From NCBI GenBank assembly GCA_028826165.1, contig JAPDFW010000066.1, positions 62,001-126,000 on the forward strand: a stretch of 64,000 bases of DNA, read 5' to 3'. Made by a program: the position numbers and the translations under genes. This DNA comes from Anaeramoeba ignava BMAN (taxonomy: Eukaryota > Protista > Anaeramoebae). Positions 37,800-62,958 of the stretch are shown in pieces. Position 1 is the stretch's first letter, and each line of letters starts with the position of its first letter. The notes beneath the pieces are model-generated. The model did not search any database, was not told where the DNA came from, and saw nothing but the letters and a program-made list of their open reading frames with translations.

Positions 37800-40669
37800 A
37801 TGGAAAAAAAGATAATTTTTGAAGGAAATAATTTTATTGCAACAAAATTTATTGGAGAAGGTTCTTATGGGCAAGTTTATTTAGGAGAAACTAAAGATAC
37901 AAATCAAGGTTGTGCAATTAAAGAAATTGATTTTGGACAAGGAGAAATAGAAAAAGAAAAAATGATAAGAGAACTTGAAATAATGGAAAAAGTTAAACAT
38001 GAAAATTGTGTTCAATTATTTTTTACTGAACCAAAAGATTATCAAAATGTAAATTTAATTAAAAAAAAGCAAAAAATTAATTAATTAAAAAATGGAATAA
38101 AAATATTAAATATTAAATAAAATAAAAAGGCTGATTCAGTTTATGTTATTATGGAATATTGTGATAGTGGAGATTTAAATGAATATCTTAAATCAAAAAA
38201 AGATAAAAATGAAAAACTTTCTATTGAAGAAGTTAAAGAAATATTTGGACAAATTGGTATTATTTATTTTCCATTTTCAAATTAAAATCAAAATCAAAAT
38301 CAAAATTAAAATCAAAATCAAAATCAAAATCAAAATCAAAATCAAATTGAAAATCAAAATCAAAATTAAAATCAAAATCAAAATCAAAATCAAAATCAAA
38401 ATCAAATTGAAAATCAAAATCAAAATTAAAATCAAAATCAAAATCAAAATCAAAATCAAAATCAAAATCAAAATCAAAATTAAAATTAAAATCAAAATAA
38501 AAATCAAAATTCAAAATCAAAATCAAATTCAAATTCAAAATCAAAATCAAAATCAAAATCAAATTCAAAATCAAAATCAAAATCAAAATCAAAATCAAAA
38601 TCAAAATCAAATTCAAAATCAAAATCAAAATCAAAATTAAAATCAAAATCAAAATTAAAATCAAAATCAAAATTAAAATCAAAATCAAATTGAAAATCAA
38701 AATCAAAATTAAAATCAAAATCAAATTCAAATTCAAAATCAAAATTTAAATCAAAATCAAAATTAAAATTAAAATTAAAATCAAAATCAAAATCAAATTA
38801 AAATTAAAATCAAAATCAAAATCAAAATCAAAATCAAAATTAAAATTAATAAATTCAAAATATAAATAGTTTTTGGATTGAAATATTTATATGAAAAAGG
38901 GATTGTTCATCGTGATTTAAAACCTGAAAATATTCTTCTTCAATCAAATAATAATTCAAAATTTGGATATACAATTAAATTAGCAGATTTTGGATTTGCA
39001 AGAAAAATTCCAAAAGATGATTTAGAAAAATCAACATGGATGAAGTCATTTATTGGAACACCTTTATATGTGGGACCAGAAGTTTGGAATATATATTTTT
39101 TAAAATAATAAAATCAAATTATTTTAATGAATTTTAATTTTGAAATTGGAAAAAATATTTTTTATTCAAATTGGAAAAAATAGATTTTATTTAATATTCC
39201 TTATAAATCAAATGTTGATTTATGGAGTTTAGGTGCAATTTTATATGAACTTATTACAGGATCACCTCCTTTTCAAGCTAAAGATATTGATGATTTAGAA
39301 CGACAATATAACAATACAATCAAAAAATCACTTCCAGATTCATATTTAGTAAATTACATCCAAAAAACAATTAAAATTCAAAATTCAAAATTCAAAATCA
39401 AATTCAAATTCAAATTCAAATTCAAAATCAAAATCAAAATCAAAATCAAAATCAAAATCAAAATTAAAATCAAAATTAAAATCAAAATCAAATTCAAATT
39501 CAAATTCAAAATCAAATTCAAAATCAAAATCAAATTCAAATTCAAAATCAAAATCAAAATTAAAATCAAAATTAAAATCAAAATTAAAATCAAAATCAAA
39601 TTCAAAATCAAAATCAAAATCAAATTCAAAATCAAAATCAAAATCAAATTCAAAATCAAAATCAAAATTAAAATCAAAATCAAAATCAAATTCAAAATCA
39701 AAATCAAAATCAAATTCAAATCAAAATTAAAATTAAAATCAAAATCAAAATCAAAATTAAAATCAAAATCAAAAATCAAATAAAATTAAAATCAAAATCA
39801 AAATCAAAATCAAAATCAAAATTAGATTCAAATTCAAAATTAAAATCAAAATTAAAATTAAAATCAAAATCAAAATTCAAAATCAAATCCAAATTCAAAT
39901 TCAAATTCAAAATCAAATTCAAAATTCAAAATTCAAATTAAAATCAAAATTAAAATTAAAATCAAAATTAAAATCAAAATCAAAATTAAATCAAAATCAA
40001 AATCAAAAATTAAAATAAAAAGGAAAAAGTTCCAAAAGAATGCAATGATTTAATTGAAAAATTATTAACTGTTGATCCAAATTTAAGAATTAAAAGAGAA
40101 GAATTATATAAACATCCTTTTATTTCTGAAAAATTAGTAAATTATTTCAAATTTCAAAAAAAGAATTTATATTCCAAAAAAAAATATTTTAAATTAATAA
40201 ATAGAATGAATTAAAGGAAAAATCAAATAGAATTGTAAAAACAGAAAAGAAAATAATTGGAGTTGCAAAAGAAGATTTTGAAAGCAAAGAAAATGGAAAA
40301 TTTTCATTTAAAAAAGGAGAAATAATTGAAATTATTGAAATTTATAAAGATAAAGAAATTTGTGAAGGAAAATTAAAAGAAAAAGAAGGAATTATTGAAT
40401 TAAAAAGAATTGATTTATATGAAGAAATTGAAGATATTTATTCAATAAATGAATCAAATAATAATAATGATAATCAATTAATTAATTTTGAAAAAAGAAC
40501 TATTGGAATTGTTAAATTTGAATATAAAACAAATGAAATTTCATTATCAAAAGAAGATTTAGTTGAAATTATTAATATAAATGAAGATAATAATTATTGT
40601 ATAATTCAATTTGGAAATCAAAAATATGAAATTCCTTTTTTCTTTTTTGATTTTTATAAAAAAATTTAA
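37800..40669 (+). CDS. ULK/Atg1-like kinase + 2 SH3-like domains, copy 13 (end of array)
   Basis: Motifs [20 protein letters not shown] and GTPLYVGPE. The stop at 40667-40669 follows directly after the second SH3-like domain. Confidence 0.88.
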
Positions 40670-40854
40670 TTTTAAAAAAAAAGAAGAAGATAAAATTAAT
40701 AAAATTAATTGAGAGAAATAAGAATTTAATATTTAAATGGAAAAAAGAAAAAATAATAAGAAATTAATTATAATTTTAATTTAAAAAAGAGAATATTTTT
40801 TTTATTAAAAATTTTTTCCGAAATTTAATTAAAAAAAAAAATAATTCAAAAATT

Positions 40855-40901: not shown

Positions 40902-43900
40902 ATGACATTATTTCAATCAAATTTTTTTTATATTTCAGAAAATATTTCAACAAATCCAAAAAAACTTTTTAATATTTTAATTCAAAATGGAGGAAAAGTA
41001 TTAGAAGATTTTAATGAAAATGCATTTATAATTTCAGAAATTGATCCAAATGTTTATTAATAAAAAATAAAAAAGAAAAAAGAAAAAAATTTTAATTTAA
41101 AATTTAAAATTTAAAAACAAAAGAAATTTAATCAATATCCTTCAAATCTTATTACACCTAATTTTATTTATGAATCTATTTCTCTCAGTAAAAAAATTAT
41201 GAAATTAAATCATCCATTTCATTCTTATTGTTTAAATGGAGAAAATATATATTTTAACAATTTATCGACTAATAAACATGTAAATAATTAAATTATAAAT
41301 AAAATTATAAATTAAATTATAAATAAAATTATAAATAAAATTATAAATAAAATTATAAATAAAATTATAAATTAAATTATAAATTAAATTATAAATTAAA
41401 TTATAAATAAAATTATAAATTAAATTATAAATAAATATAAATAAAATTATAAATTAAATTATAAATTAAATTAAATTATAAATAAAATTATAAATAAAAT
41501 TATAAATAAAAAAAAATTATAAATTAAATTATAAATTAAATTATAAATATAAATTAAATTATAAATAAAATTATAAATTAAAATTATAAATTAAATTATA
41601 AATAAAATTATAAATAAAATTATAAATTAAAATTATAAATAAATTATAAATTAAATTATAAATTAAATTATAAATTAAATTATAAATAAAATTATAAATA
41701 AAATTATAAATAAATTAAAATTATAAATTAAATTATAAATTAAATTATAAATTAAATTAAATTATAAATTAAATTATAAATTAAATTATAAATTAATAAA
41801 ATTATAAATTAAATTATAAATTAAATTATAAATTAAATTAAATAAATAAATAAAATTATAAATAAAATTATAAATAAAATTATAAATTAAATTATAAATT
41901 AAATTATAAAAATTAAATTATAAATAAAAAATTATAAATTAAATTAAATAAAATAAAAATATAAATTATAAATTAAATTATAAATAAAAATTATAAATAA
42001 AATTATAAATTAAATTATAAATTTAAAGAAAAAAATTCTGTTTCAAATTCTTTGTATGAATGGTCAATATTCTACAGAAATTACTCCACAAGTTACACAT
42101 ATAATTATTGATATAAGTGAAGAAAATAGACAAATCATTAATGATCCAAGAGTTATTGATATTGAATGGATTGAACAATGTTGGAATAATCATAGAAACA
42201 TTAAATCAATTATTTTCCCACAATTTTCAAAATGTTGCATTTCAACAACTGGATTTTCTGAAGAAGAAACAAAAAATATTGAAAATTTGATTAATAAATT
42301 TTCAGGAGAAATACATTCTGCTTTTATAAAAAAAACCACACATCTTATAACAAAAATATCCTTTATAAAACAATTTATAAATTTATAATTATATTTATAT
42401 TTATATTTATATTTATATTTATATTTATATTTATATTTATATTTATATTTATATTTATATTTATATTTATATTTATATTTATATTTATATTTATATTTAT
42501 ATTTATATTTATATTTATATTTATATTTAAATTTATATTTATATTTATATTTATATTTATATTTATATTTATATTTATATTTATATTTATATTTATATTT
42601 ATATTTATATTTATATTTATATTTATATTTATATTTATATTTATATTTATATTTAATTTCATTTTTCCTTGACTGTTAATAATTTTTTTTATTAATATTA
42701 TTGATAATAATACATATTTAAAGGTTCAAAATACGAATCAGCAATTAGACAGAAAAAAACTATTGTTACAATTGATTGGTTGAAAAAAATGATTTTATTA
42801 ACAGGTAATTTAAATATTTATATATATTTATATAGTTATATTTATATTTAAATTTTTAGAAAGAAATCAATTTTTCCGAAATTGTATATTTTATTTTGAT
42901 CCTAATTCTATTAAAAGTTCAATCATTTCAATTCTTAAAGAAAATGTTTTGAAATTTGGTGGAATATATTTAGATAATTTTAATAATCAAGTTACTCATT
43001 TAATTATTCAAAGAACTGATGGAGAATATTATTATCAACCTGAATGGAGTGAAAATTCTAAAATTATTGATATTGAATGGATAAATGAATGTCTCAGAAA
43101 AAAAAAACTTGTAAATATATCAAATTTCTCCATTTTTCCAACAAATTTAACAGAAGAATCAAGTTTTAGATCAAGTTTAACAGCAAATCAAAATGTATTA
43201 AGTAATGCAATTTCAAGTGATTCAAAAATTTCACAAAATTCAAGAACAAATTCAATTGCTATTGATGATATTTATAAAAGAAAATCAAAATCATTTAATA
43301 AAAAGAAAAGAGATTCAAATATTGATATTGAATTTGGAAATCAAAATCAAAATCAAGATCAAGATCAACAAATAAAAAGACAAAAACAAAGAAAACAACA
43401 AAAAAATACAGAAAAAGAAATTATTCCAAAATCAATTCCAATTAATAATCTTAAAAATCCTGAAATTTCAATTAGTCTAAATAGAAACATAGAAAATATT
43501 TCAATAGAAAATGAAAAAGAAATTTCAAAATTAAATTTATCAGCAAATTATCAACAAAATACTTTAGAATATATTGAAAAACAAAATGAAATATCAGGAC
43601 TTAATTACGAACCTTATGAAGCAAATAATTTATTTCAAGGAATCTCTTTTGTGTTTGTTCAAGTAACAAAAAAAGATGAAGAAGATTGTGCTAAACTTAT
43701 TAAAGAACATGGAGGAAAAATAGAAGATAAAATCACAAATGAAACCAAATACATTTTAGTATCACATGGAGCAAGTATATTGATAAGTGAAAATTTTAGA
43801 GAAACATATGAAGAAATATTAGTTTCTAAAAATTGGTTAGAAAGATGTTGTTTTAAAACATTGATTTATAATCCAAGAGAATATTGTATTTTCAAACCTT

Positions 43901-45465
43901 TAAAAAAAGCTATTCCATTTGAATTTATGAAACAATTCCGAATATCTTTATCAGGATTTAAAAAACAAATGAAAATTAAAAATAAATACATTATCAAACA
44001 ACTTGGAGCAAAATTTACAGGAACATTATCAAGAAAAAATACACATTTGATTTGCAGAGAAGCTAAAGGGAATAAATACAAAAAAGCAATTTTATGGGGA
44101 ATCAAAATTGTAAATGAAAATTGGCTTTGTTATATTGCAGAAAGTGGAGAATATTTAAATGAAAATGATTTTTTATTTTTTAATCAAGAAGAAAAAAATA
44201 CAAATTTAAATACAAATACAAATACAAATACAAATTCAAATCAAAAAACTGAAATTGATCTTTTTGAATTAGATTCAACTCCTCAAAAAAATTCGAAATT
44301 TCAAACATTAGAATATTCTAAACCAAGAAATTCAATAAAATCAATAAATAGTGATTTTAGTTCACCTTTATATCGCAAAAAAATAACAGATAGTAATTAT
44401 TCAGAAAGTAATTCTGATATAAGTTATAGTTTAGATACAGATGCATATAATTATGAAGTTGATGAGTTTTTAGATGATGATACTCAAGAACAATTTATAT
44501 TTTATATTCTTTCAAAAACCAAAAATAAACTCAGATTAAAAGAAATTGTTTCTTCAACATTGAATTCAGCATGTTGTGAAAGATTAATATCAGATGTTAC
44601 TCATGTAATTTATTCAAAAGAAGATGAAGAAAGTGAAGAATATAAAGAAGCATTATCTTTGAAAAAGATTCTTGTTAAAGATGAAGATGTTTATGGATTT
44701 TTTGATGATCCAATTAAACTTACAAATTTTTTAAAATCAAATCGAAAAAATTCAAATGAAAAAACATCAAGTTATAAAAAATCACCAATATTAGTTAATT
44801 CAACAAATTTTGGAGGTTTAAAACAATTACAAACTCCAGAAAAATTTAAGCATGAATTATCAAATGAAAATACACCATTATCAATTAAGAAAATAACAAA
44901 TTCAAAAAATACAAATTTAAAAAATACAAATTCAAAAAATCCAAATTCAAAAAATCCAAATTCAAAAAATCCAAATTCATTTCAAACTATAATTTCACCT
45001 TGTAAAATTGTTTCACCAACAACAACATCTCCAAAAAATAATTTGGAAATTATTGATGTTTTATTTTCTAAACAAAAAAGTCCATCTCATAAAGTTAAAG
45101 AAAAATATTTAGAAAATTTAGAAAATTCAAAACAAAATCAATTTAGAAGATCAGATTTAAATATTTTTTCACAATTTTATGATAATTCACAAGTTGAAAA
45201 AAATGATTTAAAAAAAACAGAATCAAAAGAAAAAAATGAAAATGAAAATGAAAATGAAAATGAAAATGAAAATGAAAATGATAATGAAAATGATGATGAT
45301 GAACCAAATCCAATTGTTATTTGGGAAAATAGTAATCAAGAAAATGGAAAAAATATTCAAACTTTTTCTTCAAATGATAGTGATGTTGATTTATTTAAAA
45401 TTAATGGAAGTGGATCAAAAACATTTATAGAAGCATATCATAAAATGAAAAATAAAAGATTTTAA
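40902..45465 (+). CDS. TOPBP1: TopBP1/Dpb11/Cut5-like multi-BRCT protein (1109 aa, 5 exons)
   Basis: Exons 40902-41051, 41124-41279, 42029-42355, 42714-42804 and 42860-45465 join in frame (3330 nt). Several BRCT motifs (GG..VTHLI..W) are present, including ISLSGF..LGAKFTGTLSRKNTHLIC..GNKYKKA..WGI.IV..NWL, typical of TopBP1 BRCT5. Confidence 0.85.
42356..42713 (+). other. U12-type (minor spliceosome) AT-AC intron
   Basis: 5' site ATATCCTTT at 42356, branch site TTTTTCCTTGAC at 42662-42673 and 3' end TAC at 42711-42713. Removal restores the BRCT motif THLITK|IFKGSKYESA..IVTIDWL in frame. Confidence 0.9.
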
Positions 45466-45551: not shown

Positions 45552-47019
45552 ATGTCAAAATCAAAATCAAAATCAAATTCAAATTCAATAGAAAATGAAG
45601 AATTTTTTTCTTTTGAATCAATTTCAAATGAAGATTCAAATTCAGATTCAAATTCAAATTCAAATTCAGATGAAAATTTAAATCAAAATCAAAATCAAAA
45701 TCAATTATTACAAAGTACAATGTTTATCAGTCAAAATCAAAATGAAATAAAGAAACATTCAAAAAAACAAAAAGATCCATTTTATCATTCAGATTCAGAA
45801 ACAGAAACAGAAACAAATTCAAATTCAGATTCAGATTCAAATTTAAATTTAAATGAAAATTCAATTTTTATAAAAAAACAAAATCAAGAATCAGAAGAAT
45901 TATTAGATAGTATTTATCAAAAAGTTTTAAATAAAAATGAATTAACAAAAGAAGATATTAATGAAAATTATGAATTATTTAATCAAGAAATTGAATCTCA
46001 AACAAAACAAATTGAAAGAGAAATTGAAGTATATAAAAAATTTTTAGATTCAACAATAGAAATAAATTCAGAAAAAGAAAATGAAAATCAAAATCAAAAT
46101 GAAAATGAAGATTTAATAAATTTTAATGATAATTTTTCAAATTCAAATTCAAATCCAAATCCAAATATAAAACAAGAAATTGAAGAATTTAGAAAAGAAC
46201 TTGAAAAAATACAAATTGAAAAAAACAAAATATTATCAAAAATTAAAAGAACAGAAGAAAAAAAGAAAGAATATGATAAAATCAAAAAAATGTTTTGGGA
46301 AAATAATTTAGATTTTCAATATCAAAAAAAAATACAAGAAGATGAATTAGTTTCTTTAAAACATAAAATTGAAAATGCAAAAGAATCACTTTCAGAATTT
46401 GAAAATTTAAATATTTTTGATATTGTTTTTAAATTGAATTTTGATAATAAAATTGCAAGTATAAATGATTATAGATTTGGGAAATTATCACAAAATGAAG
46501 TTAGTTGGCAAGAAATTAATACAGCTTGGGGATTAACAACATTATTTCTTTTTTCATTAGCTAAAAAATTAAATTATGAATTTATTAAGTAACTTTTTAA
46601 AAAAAAAGCAAAAAAAGCAAAAAAAAAAGTGGAACAAAAAAAATTTATTCTTTTTTTCTTTCAAAACAAAATTTATTTTATTTAGTTATCAAATTATTCC
46701 TTTTGGAGAAAAATCTTATATTCAAAAACCACAAAAAAAAGAAATTAAACCTCTTTATAAAGTTGGATCTAGATTTGGGAAATCTAATCCTTTTGAAGAA
46801 GGAATGGTTTGGTTTATTGAATGTGTTGATGAATTAGGAAATTTTTTGAAAAAAAAAGATTCAAAATTTAAATTTGAATTTTTAATTAAAGGAAATTATA
46901 TTGGAAATAAAACAATTAAAGATCATAAAAAATATGAAGAATGGACAAAAGCACTTAGTTATATTTTAAAAAATTTACAACAAATTTCTAATTGGTATTC
47001 AAATTATAGAGAAATGTGA
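45552..47019 (+). CDS. ATG6: Beclin-1/Atg6/Vps30 homologue (2 exons; intron 46589-46685)
   Basis: Coiled coil followed by the BARA-domain motif ASINDYRFGKL..EVSWQEINTAWGLTTLFL..LAKKLNYEFIN|YQIIPFGEKSYI...EEWTKAL. Confidence 0.92.
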
Positions 47020-47894: not shown

Positions 47895-49271
47895 ATGAAT
47901 TTTTCAGAAAAGATAATTATAATTATTTTGTTATTTAGTGCTATTGTTGTGTTATTTCAAAGTAATTTTATTTGGGAAAAAGAAAAAGAAATAAACCAAG
48001 AAATAGAAATAAAAGAAAAAGAAAAAGAAAAAGAAAAAGAAAAAGAAAAAGAAATAGAAACAAATGGGAATGAAAATGAAACATTTAAACCAGCAATATT
48101 ACTAACTGAACTTTGGCAAGATCAAGTTGAAGATTTATCAACTAATTTAGTAACTTCATATATAACTGCAGATCAAGCAATTGCTCAATTTTCTAATTTT
48201 GCAAATTGGGCACTTAATAAACCACGTTCAGATTTAAAAATATCAAACGTTGAAGATCGTTTAAATTTAAATTGTCAAAAACAAGAAAAAAAAAATGTTA
48301 ATATGTTTGGAACAAATATTGAAGCAACAGGAAATCCAGAAGACCCAGTATTGTTTTATATTGAGGTTCCAAGGTTTGAATCTAATATCTATCATGCATT
48401 AGTTTTGGATTATTCAGCGAAAAAATTTTGGTGTGTAATGAATGAAGCTTTTTTCCAAAATCCGGCAAAAAATTATACAATTATGAGAAGACAAGATCAT
48501 GAAGATTCAAGAGACTCATATATGGAAGAACTTTTGGATCGAGTCTCAACAACGAAATGGGATCCTAAAAACAAATACAGCAAGATTATTGAAGTGGTAG
48601 CGAAAAAGGAGTTTTTGGTTGAATGTTGGGAATTTAGACCAAATACTTTAGTTGATAATACAGTTATTAAAATTGCACAAAAAATTGTCACTTTTTTTCC
48701 GCAAAAGAACCGTTCCATTTGTGGCGAATCTGGATGTGTTCTTCTGCTTCAAAGATGCGATGGATCAAGATTACTCTCTGATTACAAAACTGGATCCTTT
48801 ATCACAATAGCATCTGAATTATTAAAACGAGGAATTCCTGTTGAAATTGCGAATTTTTGTTCAACATCCGCTGCAAATCAAATTCAAGCTCTTCAGAGAG
48901 CTTCTGTTTTTGTTGGAGTTCATGGATCTGGATTGACAAATATGATTTGGTTAAGACCTAATACAACCCTTATTGAAATATCACTGAATTTTGGTTGGTG
49001 TTGTTTTGTTCCAGTTCCTGAAATTTATAGAGAATCTGTTTCTAATCCAAATCCTCAACCTTGTACTGATAAGTGTATTAAATATATGAAAGCAGATCAT
49101 TTTAATTTGGCAAAGAGGTTTAATATTAAATGGAGAGATTTTCATCCTTATTTTAGTACTCCTGTTTATAATGAAGGAGAAATTAATAGAAGAATGATTT
49201 TTGTTGATTCTGTTCTTCTTGCTGATCTTATTGAAGAAGAATATTATAAAAATCAAATCAAATCAAATTAA
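47895..49271 (+). CDS. Glycosyltransferase family 61 (DUF563; EOGT/POMGNT2/xylosyltransferase-like), type II membrane protein
   Basis: N-terminal signal anchor and stem, followed by the motif QIQALQRASVFVGVHGSGLTNMIWLRPNTTLIEI. Confidence 0.85.
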   Translation: MNFSEKIIIIILLFSAIVVLFQSNFIWEKEKEINQEIEIKEKEKEKEKEKEKEIETNGNENETFKPAILLTELWQDQVEDLSTNLVTSYITADQAIAQFSNFANWALNKPRSDLKISNVEDRLNLNCQKQEKKNVNMFGTNIEATGNPEDPVLFYIEVPRFESNIYHALVLDYSAKKFWCVMNEAFFQNPAKNYTIMRRQDHEDSRDSYMEELLDRVSTTKWDPKNKYSKIIEVVAKKEFLVECWEFRPNTLVDNTVIKIAQKIVTFFPQKNRSICGESGCVLLLQRCDGSRLLSDYKTGSFITIASELLKRGIPVEIANFCSTSAANQIQALQRASVFVGVHGSGLTNMIWLRPNTTLIEISLNFGWCCFVPVPEIYRESVSNPNPQPCTDKCIKYMKADHFNLAKRFNIKWRDFHPYFSTPVYNEGEINRRMIFVDSVLLADLIEEEYYKNQIKSN

Positions 49272-51183: not shown

Positions 51184-51409
51184 TTTTGTTCTCTTTTGTT
51201 TTTGTTTTAATTTTTTAAAAATGAAGAAAATTGAAAAAAAAGGAAAAGAAGAAAAAGAAAAAGTGGAATTTTTTTGACAAAGAATTTAAGTAAAAATTTG
51301 AATTTGAATTTGAATTTGAATTTGAAAATGGAATTAATAATCTTTTTTTTCTCTTGAATTTTGAATTTTAAATTGAATTTTGAATTGAATTTTGAAAAAT
51401 TATTTAAAG
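51184..51409 (+). repeat. Direct repeat copy A (~220 bp) flanking the FG-GAP gene
   Basis: Similar to 52968-53179 (ttttgttctcttttg..aaaagtggaattttttga..gaatttaagtaaaaatttgaatttg..gaaatggaattaataatctttttt..aattatttaaag). Confidence 0.85.
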
Positions 51410-52789
51410 TTCTTTTTCAGATTTTAAATCATATTCAATTTTTGATTGATTTTGTGAATTATTTTGTTTTTGATTAAACAAATAAACTCTACCTTTATGT
51501 GAATAAATTTTTGGAGCACTAATTACTAAATAATTATCTGAAATTAAAACAGTAAATCCAAACGAATAATTTTCTTCTCCATCATTTGCAGTTAACATTT
51601 GGATTTGATTCCATTTATTTTCATTTTGATTTTTTTGGAAAATATAAACTTTGCCTTGCTCTTCATTATCACCAACTTTTGCATAAGGAGCTCCAATTAA
51701 AAGAATATTCTCATCATTGGAAATTGAAATACTAAATCCAAGCCGATCATTTTCTTTCCCATTATTTGCAGTTAACATTTGGATTTGATTCCATTCATTT
51801 TCATTTTCATTTTTTTGGAAAATATAAACTTTGCCTTGTTCTTTATTATCTCCAACTTTTGCATAAGGAGCTCCAATTAAAAGAATATTATCATCATTGG
51901 AAATTGAAATACTAACTCCAAAATGATCATTTTGTTTCCCATTATTTGCAGTTAAAATTTGGATTTGATTCCATTCATTTTCATTTTCATTTTTTTGGAA
52001 AATATAAACTTTTCCTTGTTCTTCATTATCTCCAACTTTTGCATAAGGAGCTCCAATTAAAAGAATATTATCATCATTGGAAATTGAAATACTCCATCCA
52101 AATAAATTATATTCTTTCCCATCATTTGCAGTTAATATTTGGATTTTATTCCATTTATTTTCATTTTGATTTTTTTGGAAAATATAAACTTTTCCTTGTT
52201 CTTCATTATCTCCAACTTTTGCACCAGGAGCTCCAATTAAAAGAATATTATCATCTTTGGAAATTGAAATACTCTCTCCAAATAAATCATTTTGTTTCCC
52301 ATCATTTGCAGTTAAAATTTGGATTTGATTCCATTTATTTTCATTTTCATTTTTTTGGAAAATATAAACTTTTCCTTGTTCTTTATTATTTCCAACTTTT
52401 GCTCGAGGAGCTCCAATTAAAAGAATATTCTCATCTTTGGAAATTGAAATACTCCATCCAAACCAATCATTTTCTTCTTCATCATTTGCAGTTAATATTT
52501 GGATTTGATTCCATTTATTTTCATTTTCATTTTTTTGGAAAATATAAGCTTTGCCTTGTTCTTTATTATTCTCAAATATTGCACCAGGAGCTCCAATTAA
52601 AAGAATATTCTCATCTTTGGAAATTGAAATACTAAATCCAAATAAATCATTTTCTTTCCAATCATTTGCAGTTAACATTTGGATTTGATTCCATTTATTT
52701 TCATTTTGATTTTTTTGAGTTGAAAAAAGAAAAATTAATAATAAAATTAAGAATTGAATAAAGAAAGTTGATTTTTGAATTGTTTTCAT
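51404..52789 (-). CDS. Secreted FG-GAP repeat (integrin-alpha-like beta-propeller) protein, 461 aa
   Basis: The likely start MKTIQK at 52789 is followed by a hydrophobic signal. It has about 7 repeats of 60 aa/180 bp (LTANDG..D.FG.SISIS..ILLIGAP..EQGKVYIF) and ends in EKEL. Confidence 0.88.
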   Translation of the reverse strand: MKTIQKSTFFIQFLILLLIFLFSTQKNQNENKWNQIQMLTANDWKENDLFGFSISISKDENILLIGAPGAIFENNKEQGKAYIFQKNENENKWNQIQILTANDEEENDWFGWSISISKDENILLIGAPRAKVGNNKEQGKVYIFQKNENENKWNQIQILTANDGKQNDLFGESISISKDDNILLIGAPGAKVGDNEEQGKVYIFQKNQNENKWNKIQILTANDGKEYNLFGWSISISNDDNILLIGAPYAKVGDNEEQGKVYIFQKNENENEWNQIQILTANNGKQNDHFGVSISISNDDNILLIGAPYAKVGDNKEQGKVYIFQKNENENEWNQIQMLTANNGKENDRLGFSISISNDENILLIGAPYAKVGDNEEQGKVYIFQKNQNENKWNQIQMLTANDGEENYSFGFTVLISDNYLVISAPKIYSHKGRVYLFNQKQNNSQNQSKIEYDLKSEKEL

Positions 52790-52967
52790 TTTGTTTTTAA
52801 ATTTATTATTATTATTATTAAAAAATTTTGAAAAGAAAAAAATGAAAAAAAAATGAAAAAAAAAATTTATTTTTAAATTCAAAAAAAGGAAAAAAAAAGG
52901 AAAAAAAGGAAAAAAAAAAAGTGGAAAAAAAAAAAGGATAAAAAAAAGTGGAATCTTTTTATTTAGA

Positions 52968-55128: not shown

Positions 55129-56772
55129 TCAATTCTTTCTTTTTGAAGGTTTTTCTAAATTTCCATCTCCTCCTCTTCTATAATTATATAAATATTTTTG
55201 TTGAATTTTCTTTTTTTCTTTTTCTTCTTCTTCTTTTTCTTTTTCTTTTTGATTTTCTTTTTGATTTTTGAATTGATTTTCCAAATTATCATTCTTATTT
55301 GATTTTGGAAATAGAAAATTATTCTCTTGAATACTATATTTTTCATCTTTAAGATAAGTAGTATCTTGATCAGTTAAATGAGTCCATTTTGATCTTCCTT
55401 TTTTCCCCATATTTTTAACTTGCAAAACTTTTGGAAGAAGTGATTTATCAAAAATATCTCTTTCAGTTGGAGCTGAAATATCCCTTTGGATAATTGGATT
55501 ATCTTCATCTTGGAAAAACACTCCTTTGTGGCGATAAACTTGAAGAAAAGCCCATTTTTGTTTTTCTTTTTGCTTTGCAAACTTTCCAATTTCCAATTTT
55601 TCATCTTCTTTTAATTTTTCTTCTTCATTCATTTTTCTTCTTCTTTTTATCTCTAATTGCTCTCTTTTATATGAAGTTTCCTCTTCTTTTTCTTTTTTGA
55701 TTCTTAAAAGCTCGCGAATTTTCCATTTTTCTTTTTCTTCTTCTTGATTAAATAATTCATCTTTATCAATAAAAAAATTTTCTTGTTGATAATTTCCATT
55801 TTCATCTTCTCCTCCTTTTTTTTCTCTTAAATCTTCTGCTTCTAATAGTGATTCAACTTGCTTTTGAACTTCTATTTTTCTTTCATTTTCTCTTTCTTGT
55901 TTTCTTTTCAATTCTTCTTCTTCTTGTTTTTCTATTTCTTCTATTGAAGGTTGTTGACGTTCTTCTTTTTTCTTAAAAATTGGTTTGAAATTTTTAAATA
56001 ATGAATTTTTTTCATCATCAGAATCAGAATCAGAATCAGAATCATAAGATATTATTTCATTTTCTGATTCTATTTTTTGTTCAAATTCGAATTCGAATTC
56101 CATTTTATTTTGATTATTTTTTTCTTCTTTTTCTTGCAAAAGAATATTTTCAATATCTATATCAACATTTTTATTTAATAATTGATTTTCAATTTTATTT
56201 TTAAATTGATTTTGTTTTTGAATTTGATTTTCATTTTTAAATTGATTTTGATTTTGATTTTGAATTTTAAATTGATTTTCATTTTTAAATTGATTTTGAT
56301 TTTGATTTTGATTTTCATTTTTAAATTGATTTTTATTTTCATTTTTAAATTGATTTTTATTTTCATTTTGATTTTCATTTTGATTTTCAGGTTTTTTAAT
56401 AATTGTTGCTTTATGTATTTTTCTTCCATGTTTTACTTCTGTTTTTTTTATATTCTCAACTTCAGATCTTTTTATATTATCATCTTCATTTTGAATATTT
56501 ATTTCATTTTGTTTTTTATTTTCTTCAATTTTTTTATTTTCTGAAGAAAATTTTTGAAGTCTAAGTAAACGTGAATCAATTTTTTTTAATTTTTCTTTTT
56601 CTTCTTTTTCTTCTTCTTCTTTTATTAATTTTTTTTCCTTAATTCTTTCTTGATTTATTTTTTCGGTTTTATTTCCTTGATTTTTTGATTCTTTTTGATT
56701 TGAATTTTGTGCAAAATCAGGTATTCTTCCTGCAAAATATCTTATTTTTTTAATTGGTTTATTTTTATTCAT
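55129..56772 (-). CDS. MFAP1: MFAP1 (spliceosomal B-complex protein)
   Basis: N-terminal [11 protein letters not shown] and C-terminal [62 protein letters not shown]. Confidence 0.93.
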
Positions 56773-60341: not shown

Positions 60342-61472
60342 ATGGATCTTGATATACAAGCATTTGTAATTGATAATGGATCTGGTATGACAAAAATAGG
60401 ATTTGCAGGAGATGATGCACCAAGAGCAATTTTCCCATCAATTGTTGAAAGACCAAGATATACAGGAATTATGATGGGAATGGACATGAGAATAAGTAAA
60501 TATGTAGGAGAAGAAGCACAATCCAAAAGGGGAATATTAACATTAAAATATCCAATAGAACGAGGAATAGTAACAAATTGGGATGATATGGAAAAAATAT
60601 GGCATCATGCATTTTATAATGAAGTAAAAGTAGCACCTGAAGAACATCCAATTTTATTAACTGAAGTTCCATTTAATCCAAAAAAAAACAGAGAGAAAAC
60701 AACTCAAATAATGTTTGAAACATTTAACATTCCAGCTTTTTATCTTGCAAATCAATCAGTTTTATCACTTTATGCTTCAGGAATATTAACAGGAATAGTT
60801 ATTGAATCTGGTGATGGTGTTTCTCATATTGTCCCTATTTATGAAGGATATACTTTACCTCATGCAATTATGAGAATTGATTTGGCAGGAAGAGATTTGA
60901 CTGATTATTTAATGAAAATTTTAACAGAAAGAGGATATTCATTTACAACAAGTGCTGAAAGAGAAATTGTTAGAGATATCAAAGAAAAACTTTGTTATGT
61001 TGCTTTTGATTTTGATGAAGAAATGATCATTTCAAATAAATCTTCTTCTATTGAGAAAGATTATGAATTACCTGATGGACAAGTTATCACAATTGGAAAT
61101 GAAAGATTTAGATGTCCAGAAGTTTTGTTTCAACCTTCTTTCTTTGGAATGGAGCAAAAAGGTGTTCATCAAATAACTTATAATTCAATTCTAAAATGTG
61201 ATAATGATATCAGAAAAGATCTTTATGCAAATATTGTTTTATCAGGTGGTTCAACAATGTTTCCTGGAATTGAAGAAAGAATTCAAAGAGAAATTAATCA
61301 ATTAGCTCCTCCTGATATTGATGTTCGTGTTATTGATCCTCCTGAAAGAAAATATTCTGTTTGGATTGGAGGATCTATTTTGGCTTCTCTTTCTACTTTC
61401 CAAAATATGTGGATTTCAAAAGAAGAATATGAAGAATCTGGACCTTTAATTATTCATACAAAATGTTTTTGA
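60342..61472 (+). CDS. ACT: Actin (divergent paralogue, intronless)
   Basis: [61 protein letters not shown] and [22 protein letters not shown]. Confidence 0.97.
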
Positions 61473-61506: not shown

Positions 61507-62958
61507 ATGGAAAATTATTTAAATTTAGAAAAACTTTCAAATGATTTAAAAAATTTATTTCAAAATCAACATCAAAATGAAAATGAAAATGAAAATGAAA
61601 ATGAAAGTTATTTTGATTTTCAAATAATTTGTGAACAAAATAAAACTTCATTTAAAACTCATAAATCAATTCTTTCATCAAGAAGTCAATATTTTAAATC
61701 TCTTTTCAAATCAAAAATGAAAGAATATCAAGAAAATAAATTAATTCTAAAAGATGTTTCAAGTTCAATTCTATCTTCAATTTTGAATTATTTTTATTCA
61801 GGAAAAATTGAAATTAATTTAGAAAATGCAATTCAAATTTTAATTTTTTCATCAAAATATTTAATTGATGAATTAATTCAATTTTCATCAAATTTTATCA
61901 AAAAGAATTTACAATTTGAAACTATTATTGATATTCTTAAATTATCTGAATCAATGAACTTAAATCAATTAACAGATTCTTGTTATCAATTTATTTCACA
62001 AAATTTTGAAGAATTTTCTAAAACTTCATTTTTTCTTGAACTTGAAGAAAATCATTTAAATTCAATTTTATCAAATGATGAAATTCCAATAAATGAATTT
62101 GAACTTTTTCAATCAATAATAAAATGGGGAAAATATAAATCAAATATTAATCAAGAAATGAATAAAAAAGAAAAAGAAAAATTACAAAAACAAATTTCAA
62201 ATATTATTGATAAAATCAGATTTATTCATTTTTCAGAACAAGAATTTGAAGATATTTTGAAAGAAGATTTAATTCCAAAACAAATTTCAGAAAAATTAAC
62301 TCAATTCCAAAAACTTCAAAAACAAAATGATGAAAAAGAATTAAATCAATTTATTGAAAAAGAAAATCAAAATTCATTAATTTTCAAAACAAGATTTAGA
62401 TTAGATTCAGAAATTATACAAGAAAAAGAACATTCCAAGAAATTAAAAGAATGGATAAATGATAATGAATTCTTTTCCAAAATGAAAAAAGGATATTCAG
62501 CAAAAAGAGATGGATTTAATTGTAAAAAATGGCATGATAAAGTTGATAATAAAGGAAAAACATTAGTTATTATCAAAACCAAAGATAATTTTATTTTTGG
62601 AGGATTTACTCAAATTGGATGGATTTCAGGAAAAGATGGAGAACATATTGAAGATTCAAATGCATTTATTTTTTCATTAAGAAATGATAAGAATGATAGA
62701 AAACCAGAGAAATTTTCCATTAGAAAAGGGAAAGAAAAATATGCAATTCAATATTTTTCATCAATATGGGGTCCAGTTTTTGGAAAAAATGGACTTGATT
62801 TTTGTATTGGAATTAATTTACAACCTGGTGATGCAACTTTTGGTCGGAGTTACAATTTGCCTAAAGGAATTAATTATGATACAGATGAAGCTAAAAATTA
62901 TTTGGCTGGTTCTCTTAGTGAATGGGTTGTTGATGAACTTGAGACTTATTTTATTTAA
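61507..62958 (+). CDS. BTB/POZ-BACK-TLDc domain protein
   Basis: HKSILSSRSQYFKSLF..MKE (BTB), FLELEENHLNSILSNDEI..EFELFQSIIKW (BACK) and YSAKRDGF..WHDKVDNKGKTLVIIKT..IFGGFT..AFIFSL..GPVFG (TLDc). Confidence 0.92.
   Translation: MENYLNLEKLSNDLKNLFQNQHQNENENENENESYFDFQIICEQNKTSFKTHKSILSSRSQYFKSLFKSKMKEYQENKLILKDVSSSILSSILNYFYSGKIEINLENAIQILIFSSKYLIDELIQFSSNFIKKNLQFETIIDILKLSESMNLNQLTDSCYQFISQNFEEFSKTSFFLELEENHLNSILSNDEIPINEFELFQSIIKWGKYKSNINQEMNKKEKEKLQKQISNIIDKIRFIHFSEQEFEDILKEDLIPKQISEKLTQFQKLQKQNDEKELNQFIEKENQNSLIFKTRFRLDSEIIQEKEHSKKLKEWINDNEFFSKMKKGYSAKRDGFNCKKWHDKVDNKGKTLVIIKTKDNFIFGGFTQIGWISGKDGEHIEDSNAFIFSLRNDKNDRKPEKFSIRKGKEKYAIQYFSSIWGPVFGKNGLDFCIGINLQPGDATFGRSYNLPKGINYDTDEAKNYLAGSLSEWVVDELETYFI

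Follow-up and report, generated by a model that had tools for sequence, protein, structure and literature searches.

A U12-type AT-AC intron in a TopBP1/Dpb11-like gene of Anaeramoeba ignava and the likely retention of a minor spliceosome

A TopBP1/Dpb11-like gene of Anaeramoeba ignava BMAN is interrupted by a U12-type AT-AC intron, and this protist has very likely kept a minor spliceosome, inherited vertically, that splices it out. The intron lies at 42356 to 42713 of the window, the 64,000-nt stretch of contig JAPDFW010000066.1 (positions 62,001 to 126,000, forward strand) that we analyzed. That the host may retain such a machinery was part of the original prediction, and it is now the most likely reading, given nine more introns of the same type, three proteins specific to the minor spliceosome, and candidates for the U6atac and U11 snRNAs.

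The AT-AC introns of A. ignava and a minor spliceosome deduced from them are already known, in a supplement only. In PMC11550330, Supplementary Note 1 and Table S3B report 33 AT-AC introns in A. ignava BMAN, which were taken to strongly suggest a minor spliceosome; 32 introns start with (G/A)TATCCTTT, 27 of them with A, and 8 and 10 such introns, of the GT-AG type, were found in two A. flamelloides strains. The TopBP1-like intron very probably belongs to the 33. Our search of the main text of papers returned no link between Anaeramoeba and the minor spliceosome; it is this supplement that reports one, and the idea that the machinery had been overlooked therefore does not hold. The supplement gives no snRNA or protein evidence, denies that a conserved or U12-like branch point exists, and deems only the donor diagnostic. 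Its statement on the branch point is contradicted by a canonical branch point in at least 10 A. ignava introns, a set picked by the branch motif itself and hence not a sample of the whole intron class. New here are the evidence for the machinery, the corrected branch point, an upstream element of the snRNA genes, and a long spacing between branch point and acceptor.

The gene and its AT-AC intron comprise the following features, all on the plus strand.

40902..41051, exon 1, with the ATG and the start of a BRCT domain (BRCT_2, E 1.6e-6); aligns with residues 1-50 of KAJ5080094.1
41052..41123, intron 1, GT-AG, major type, 72 nt; same junction in KAJ5080094.1
41124..41279, exon 2, from the gene model and the alignment to KAJ5080094.1
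41280..42028, intron 2, GT-AG, 749 nt, an A/T simple repeat throughout
42029..42355, exon 3, whose end falls within a BRCT domain (position 41 of the profile)
42356..42713, U12-type AT-AC intron, 358 nt, phase 0, 3% G+C
42356..42364, U12 5' splice site ATATCCTTT, fitting RTATCCTTT exactly
42392..42655, (TATATT)n simple repeat inside the AT-AC intron
42662..42673, U12 branch-point sequence TTTTTCCTTGAC; its branch A, 42672, lies 41 nt from the end of the intron
42712..42713, AC 3' splice site of the AT-AC intron, the first AC past the branch point
42714..42804, exon 4, which supplies the rest of this BRCT domain (position 42 of the profile onward)
42805..42859, intron 4, GT-AG, 55 nt, absent from a spliced contig
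42860..45465, exon 5, with more BRCT domains, a low-complexity tail and the stop codon

The donor, branch point, AC acceptor and phase 0 are all as first described. The branch sequence at 42662-42673 is a 10/10 match to the U12 branch consensus TTCCTTRAC, no AG and no other AC occur from the branch point up to 42713, and the U12 donor differs from the GT donors of the gene's other introns. The donor 9-mer ATATCCTTT was found twice in the window, against 2.68 occurrences expected; the case for the intron rests on the combined signals, because the donor alone occurs at chance frequency. Its second occurrence, at 62488-62496, was set aside: it is on the minus strand and runs antisense to coding sequence of the BTB/TLD type.

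We then searched the 42.8-Mb genome for similar introns, as had been proposed for RTATCCTT donors coupled to the branch motif, and recovered U12-type introns in unrelated genes. The donor followed 39-400 nt downstream by TTCCTTRAC gave 14 matches, against 4 for the reversed pattern, and the donor with TTCCTTGAC gave 10, compared with 0 when TTCCTTGAC was permuted to TTCCTTAGC; the full permuted control, TTCCTTARC, overlaps the true pattern at TTCCTTAAC, and only its TTCCTTAGC part was counted. A looser donor and branch pattern matched 56 times in the genome, against 7 for its control. Inspection left nine further introns that have both the U12 donor and the U12 branch point, are low in G+C and are flanked by open frames; they reside in genes that are GPR107/108-like (three introns), ankyrin-DHHC (two) and DNA polymerase delta (two), in a second TopBP1 copy and in a potassium-channel gene. 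The inspected U12-type introns of A. ignava are 80-411 nt long. Six other donor-plus-branch matches (L007, L023, L024, L029, L030 and L034) were discarded as chance occurrences, with a G+C-rich interior or an inconsistent frame.

Some of these genes deserve a separate description. The DNA polymerase delta gene (G000:C104) holds two consecutive AT-AC U12-type introns, one of 203 nt in phase 1 and one of 411 nt in phase 2 (1096-1298 and 1501-1911 in the numbering of the extracted locus, L035). A U12 donor and branch point also mark the intron of the potassium-channel gene (G000:C1; L022:1501-1762), for which non-canonical GT..AT ends, 11 nt past the branch A, are the probable boundaries, as they best fit the frame and the pore motif. 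About a dozen more A/T-rich stretches, matched by the looser pattern, begin with a U12 donor and end with a branch-like motif, TTTTC(C/T)TT(A/G)A(C/T), for example C13:31031, C46:236450, C64:622628, C67:250935, C84:201761, C93:515892 and C110:19717; they are probably further minor introns. The human AT-AC intron in TMEM87A/B, genes of the same Pfam family as the GPR107/108-like ones, occupies a different position, and we claim no match with the Anaeramoeba genes. Human ZDHHC13 and ZDHHC17 carry AT-AC introns (PMC8280824 supplement). When the 10-nt flanks are read in phase 1, the human genes give P-D-L and N-D-L and one Anaeramoeba gene P-N-L, and these short flanks suggest that the ZDHHC13/17-type intron position may be inherited.

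Having collected these introns, we compared the distances from the branch A to the intron end, which fall into two groups (11, 12, 12, 13 and 17 nt; 37, 38, 39, 41 and 41 nt). The published optimum is 11-13 nt (PMC3584512), a typical rather than absolute range, and the TopBP1-like intron, at 41 nt from its consensus branch point, lies outside it. The longer group spans three independent intron families, that of the TopBP1-like intron included, and in this group the acceptor is the first AC past the branch point. Two short-spaced introns pass over an AC at 10 nt and use the one at 12, which fits a minimum branch-to-acceptor distance. In three GPR107/108-like paralogues, the AT-AC intron sits at the same position but with distances of 12, 38 and 37 nt; the length of the spacer has therefore changed within one family.

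The unusual spacing would disappear if the minor spliceosome used a degenerate site closer to the acceptor, TTTTATTAAT, whose A is 18 nt from the intron end. Such a proximal branch would make the distance ordinary and concerns the position of the branch only, being otherwise compatible with a minor spliceosome. The site matches the consensus at 8/10 positions and sits near the known optimum, but it is devoid of the CC core, whereas the distal site scores 10/10, and a perfect distal site in an intron of 3% G+C is hard to explain without selection. Across the long-spaced introns, the proximal alternatives are weaker (6-8/10, against 9-10/10 for the distal sites), those other than the TopBP1-like intron reaching only 6-7/10. 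We therefore regard branching at the proximal site as unlikely and keep the distal branch point.

According to the known mechanism, U11 would pair with the donor of the intron, and U12 RNA, which was not found in the genome, would pair with the branch point and bulge out A42672. U6atac would then replace U11 and catalyze both splicing steps, and the 3' site would be the first AC to occur some 11 nt or more past the branch point. This AC lies 41 nt from the branch A because the A/T-rich spacer contains neither AC nor AG.

Next, we looked for the components of the machinery, starting with the RNAs. The original prediction had named U11, U12, U4atac and U6atac as targets for an Rfam search: candidates were obtained for U6atac and U11, both below the Rfam cut-offs, and neither U12 nor U4atac was found in the A. 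ignava genome by Rfam models or sequence patterns. The U6atac candidate (G000:C71:58882-58994) scores 29.9 bits against a cut-off of 33, with an E value of 2.7e-4, and keeps AAGGAGAGA, GGUUAGCA and the stem-loop with an AU bulge. The U11 candidate (G000:C1:50977-51083) scores 26 bits against a cut-off of 39, with an E value of 0.21 that is not significant alone; it has a 5' AAAGGA, an AUCAA loop and a poor Sm site, and the AAAGGA near its 5' end is complementary to positions 4-9 of the TopBP1-like intron. We also identified a divergent gene for the major U4 snRNA (G000:C95; L006:1509-1648), which scores 39.7 bits against a cut-off of 46.

The motif TCCATAAT, whose background frequency is ~2e-5 per nt, occurs 68-70 nt upstream of U4 and of both the U6atac and the U11 candidate, and constitutes the main support for the U11 candidate. 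In all three cases, it is followed by ~60 nt of nearly pure A/T. On these grounds, TCCATAAT probably acts as an snRNA promoter element in A. ignava, and it could be used to find other snRNA genes. Several RNA candidates were rejected. The U4atac (RF00618) match at L006 scores better as the major U4, the U6atac matches L002-L004 are weak and without the TCCATAAT element upstream, and the U4atac pattern matches C111:75721 and C60:1395115 are without a kink-turn motif and probably coding. A U12 candidate, G000:C58:345204, resembled the 5' end of human U12 and complemented the U6atac candidate; it was dropped, since it lacks stems as well as the upstream element and reads like the end of an exon with the major donor GTAAGG behind it.

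Among the proteins proposed as markers of the minor spliceosome, homologues of SNRNP25 (25K; PF18036, 57.1 bits) and PDCD7 (59K; PF16021, 49.2 bits) were found at the Pfam level, both over the cut-off, and SNRNP48 was without a match. A CENATAC homologue also passes the Pfam cut-off (PF14968, 37.7 bits); both zinc fingers are visible in the locus, and its exon 1 has no match in the PDB. The exon-wise genome search gave no Pfam match for SNRNP48 (zf-U11-48K), SCNM1 (zf-SCNM1) or CRIPT (Cript), the 48K and SCNM1 models being just 25-27 positions long, and TXNL4B was not found, with only one DIM1 gene in the genome. Matches to zf-U1 are present in the genome.

Since U12, U4atac, 48K, SCNM1, CRIPT and TXNL4B went undetected, we considered that U12 and U4atac might be lost and the TopBP1-like intron a relic, spliced by a major spliceosome that is modified or hybrid, using U2 and perhaps U6atac. 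The 37-41 nt between branch point and acceptor, with T-rich spacers in three intron families, would then reflect a 3' site selection of the major type. However, unrelated genes still carry exact U12 donors and branch points, and the three minor-specific proteins are present, as are the U6atac and U11 candidates with their snRNA-type upstream element. The absences are also open to a technical explanation: the Rfam search scored just 41-50 candidates per family, and a divergent, A/T-rich U12 is easily missed when even U4 falls below its cut-off, while the missing 48K and SCNM1 were sought with short models, exon by exon. A hybrid machinery is accordingly very improbable in our view. Another proposal is that the minor spliceosome is retained in a reduced or strongly divergent form, with U12 and U4atac unrecognizable or replaced, several activation factors gone, and the spacing relaxed to the point that a canonical branch point functions 37-41 nt from an AC acceptor reached by scanning; we put this forward tentatively, as less probable than not by some distance. 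Retention of a minor spliceosome remains the preferred reading.

The intron itself is well anchored in the gene model. The five exons form a single open frame of 1109 aa, and translation without the AT-AC splice meets a stop after 221 aa; the full frame and the rebuilt BRCT core that had been announced both follow from splicing 42356-42713. Homology searches were run separately on each exon, the joined translation being used just for frame checks, and under this five-exon model, with separate exon alignments, the AT-AC ends restore the reading frame. In the PTCB-BRCT profile, exon 3 stops at position 41, and exon 4 already reaches position 43 with its residue 2. In Schizosaccharomyces pombe Rad4, residue 107 of exon 3 corresponds to Rad4 143 and residue 3 of exon 4 to Rad4 148, and the alignment is therefore gap-free across the intron. 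Exons 3 and 4, aligned singly, adjoin with an offset of 0 in 23 of 36 distant homologues.

It had been stated that no GT donor exists between the start of this BRCT repeat and the in-frame stop. This is correct from 42200 onward with the exception of one GT, at 42234, which is just within the Pfam start of the BRCT domain and whose use would remove most of the domain. The expectation that a standard gene finder would split or truncate the gene was not borne out either, as the deposited annotation, which concerns a second copy of the gene, reads through the AT-AC junction: the closest protein, KAJ5080094.1 ([quoted passage not shown]; NCBI), joins exons 3 and 4 exactly there. The tandem N-terminal BRCT domains of the window gene are also found in the TopBP1, Rad4 (Cut5) and Dpb11 scaffolds, and the best relatives of its product among solved structures are ECT2, Rad4 and TopBP1. 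The ECT2-type RhoGEF domain is without a Pfam match in the gene, and the TopBP1-like label is given by sequence similarity. No A. flamelloides orthologue was retrieved in the homologue search, and TOPBP1 is absent from the searched portion of human U12 intron lists.

Evidence for splicing at the RNA level came from the one public run containing the gene, the kind of which is not on record and whose reads were compared over 42657-43300, on the acceptor side. A 151-nt contig aligns to 42714-42804 and then from 42862, skipping intron 4, and must therefore derive from spliced RNA. Its alignment starts at exactly 42714, the preceding five letters not fitting the intron end, which supports the AC acceptor at 42712-42713 and rules out the AG at 42722. 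On the donor side, at 42355/42356, the support is indirect, and the deposited protein of the second copy has the junction. Of the predicted joining of 42355 to 42714 in reads, the acceptor half was thus seen and a donor-spanning read was not.

A near-identical second copy of the TopBP1-like gene is located near the end of an 80-kb contig (G000:C16:73034-76280) and carries the same AT-AC intron, with a length of 287 nt, or 71 nt less. There are 0 differences between the two copies in exon 3, and the C16 copy provides no independent evidence because it is almost identical to the window copy; it may represent a haplotig or a recent duplicate, or stem from an error of assembly or annotation. KAJ5080094.1 appears to derive from it and has just 598 aa; compared with the window copy, it ends early and misses 41 residues in a gap. 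At two sites that distinguish the copies, the 151-nt contig agrees with the window copy, while another contig from the same run bears the C16 alleles, so both copies are transcribed.

That the AT-AC intron is not real but a chance motif, an assembly artifact or part of a pseudogene, as the chance frequency of the donor 9-mer alone might suggest, can practically be dismissed in view of the gap-free protein continuity, the spliced contig beginning at the acceptor, the same intron in the second copy and the use of the junction in KAJ5080094.1.

Overall, the A. ignava introns resemble the U12-type introns described elsewhere (reviewed in PMC3584512) in their RTATCCTTT donor, TTCCTTRAC branch and AT-AC ends, in making up a tiny share of all introns, of which 32,108 are annotated in A. 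ignava, and in residing in familiar kinds of host genes (ZDHHC13/17-like, replication and checkpoint genes). The homologues of CENATAC, 25K and 59K also agree with the known system, as does an apparent minimum of 11-12 nt between branch point and acceptor. In contrast, the 37-41 nt spacing in three intron families departs from it, as do the failure of Rfam models to detect U12 and U4atac in A. ignava and that of several accessory proteins to appear. The share of AT-AC introns is 27/32 in A. ignava (PMC11550330) and about 26% in human (PMC10639083), and Blastocystis ST1 has hundreds of very short minor introns (PMC10639083), compared with about 30 in A. ignava.

The literature agrees with the earlier statement that the minor spliceosome is considered lost in the well-studied metamonad parasites: Monocercomonoides has no AT-AC introns and no minor components (PMC6759080), and Spironucleus yielded no minor snRNAs (PMC6679479). 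A pan-eukaryotic survey reported no minor introns in the Discoba sampled, and metamonads are unmentioned in the main text of a 2023 survey. If a minor spliceosome is retained in Anaeramoeba, the metamonad ancestor would have possessed one, which was later lost in gut-dwelling and parasitic lines. With candidates for the machinery, an upstream element for snRNA genes and the branch point corrected, this retention becomes testable, and in the long branch-to-acceptor spacing nature offers a test of the rigidity of U12 3' site selection.

Finally, some other genes of the window were noted. A Beclin/Atg6-like gene (45552-47019, plus strand) starts 87 nt past the stop codon of the TopBP1-like gene, and further downstream are the following.

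47895-49271, plus strand, Glycosyltransferase 61
51404-52882, minus strand, FG-GAP repeat protein
55129-56772, minus strand, MFAP1, a splicing factor
60342-61472, plus strand, intronless actin
61507-62958, plus strand, BTB-BACK-TLD protein

Upstream, several SH3-domain open reading frames recur at 746-21299 and about 40200-40670 of the window, which suggests a tandemly expanded family.
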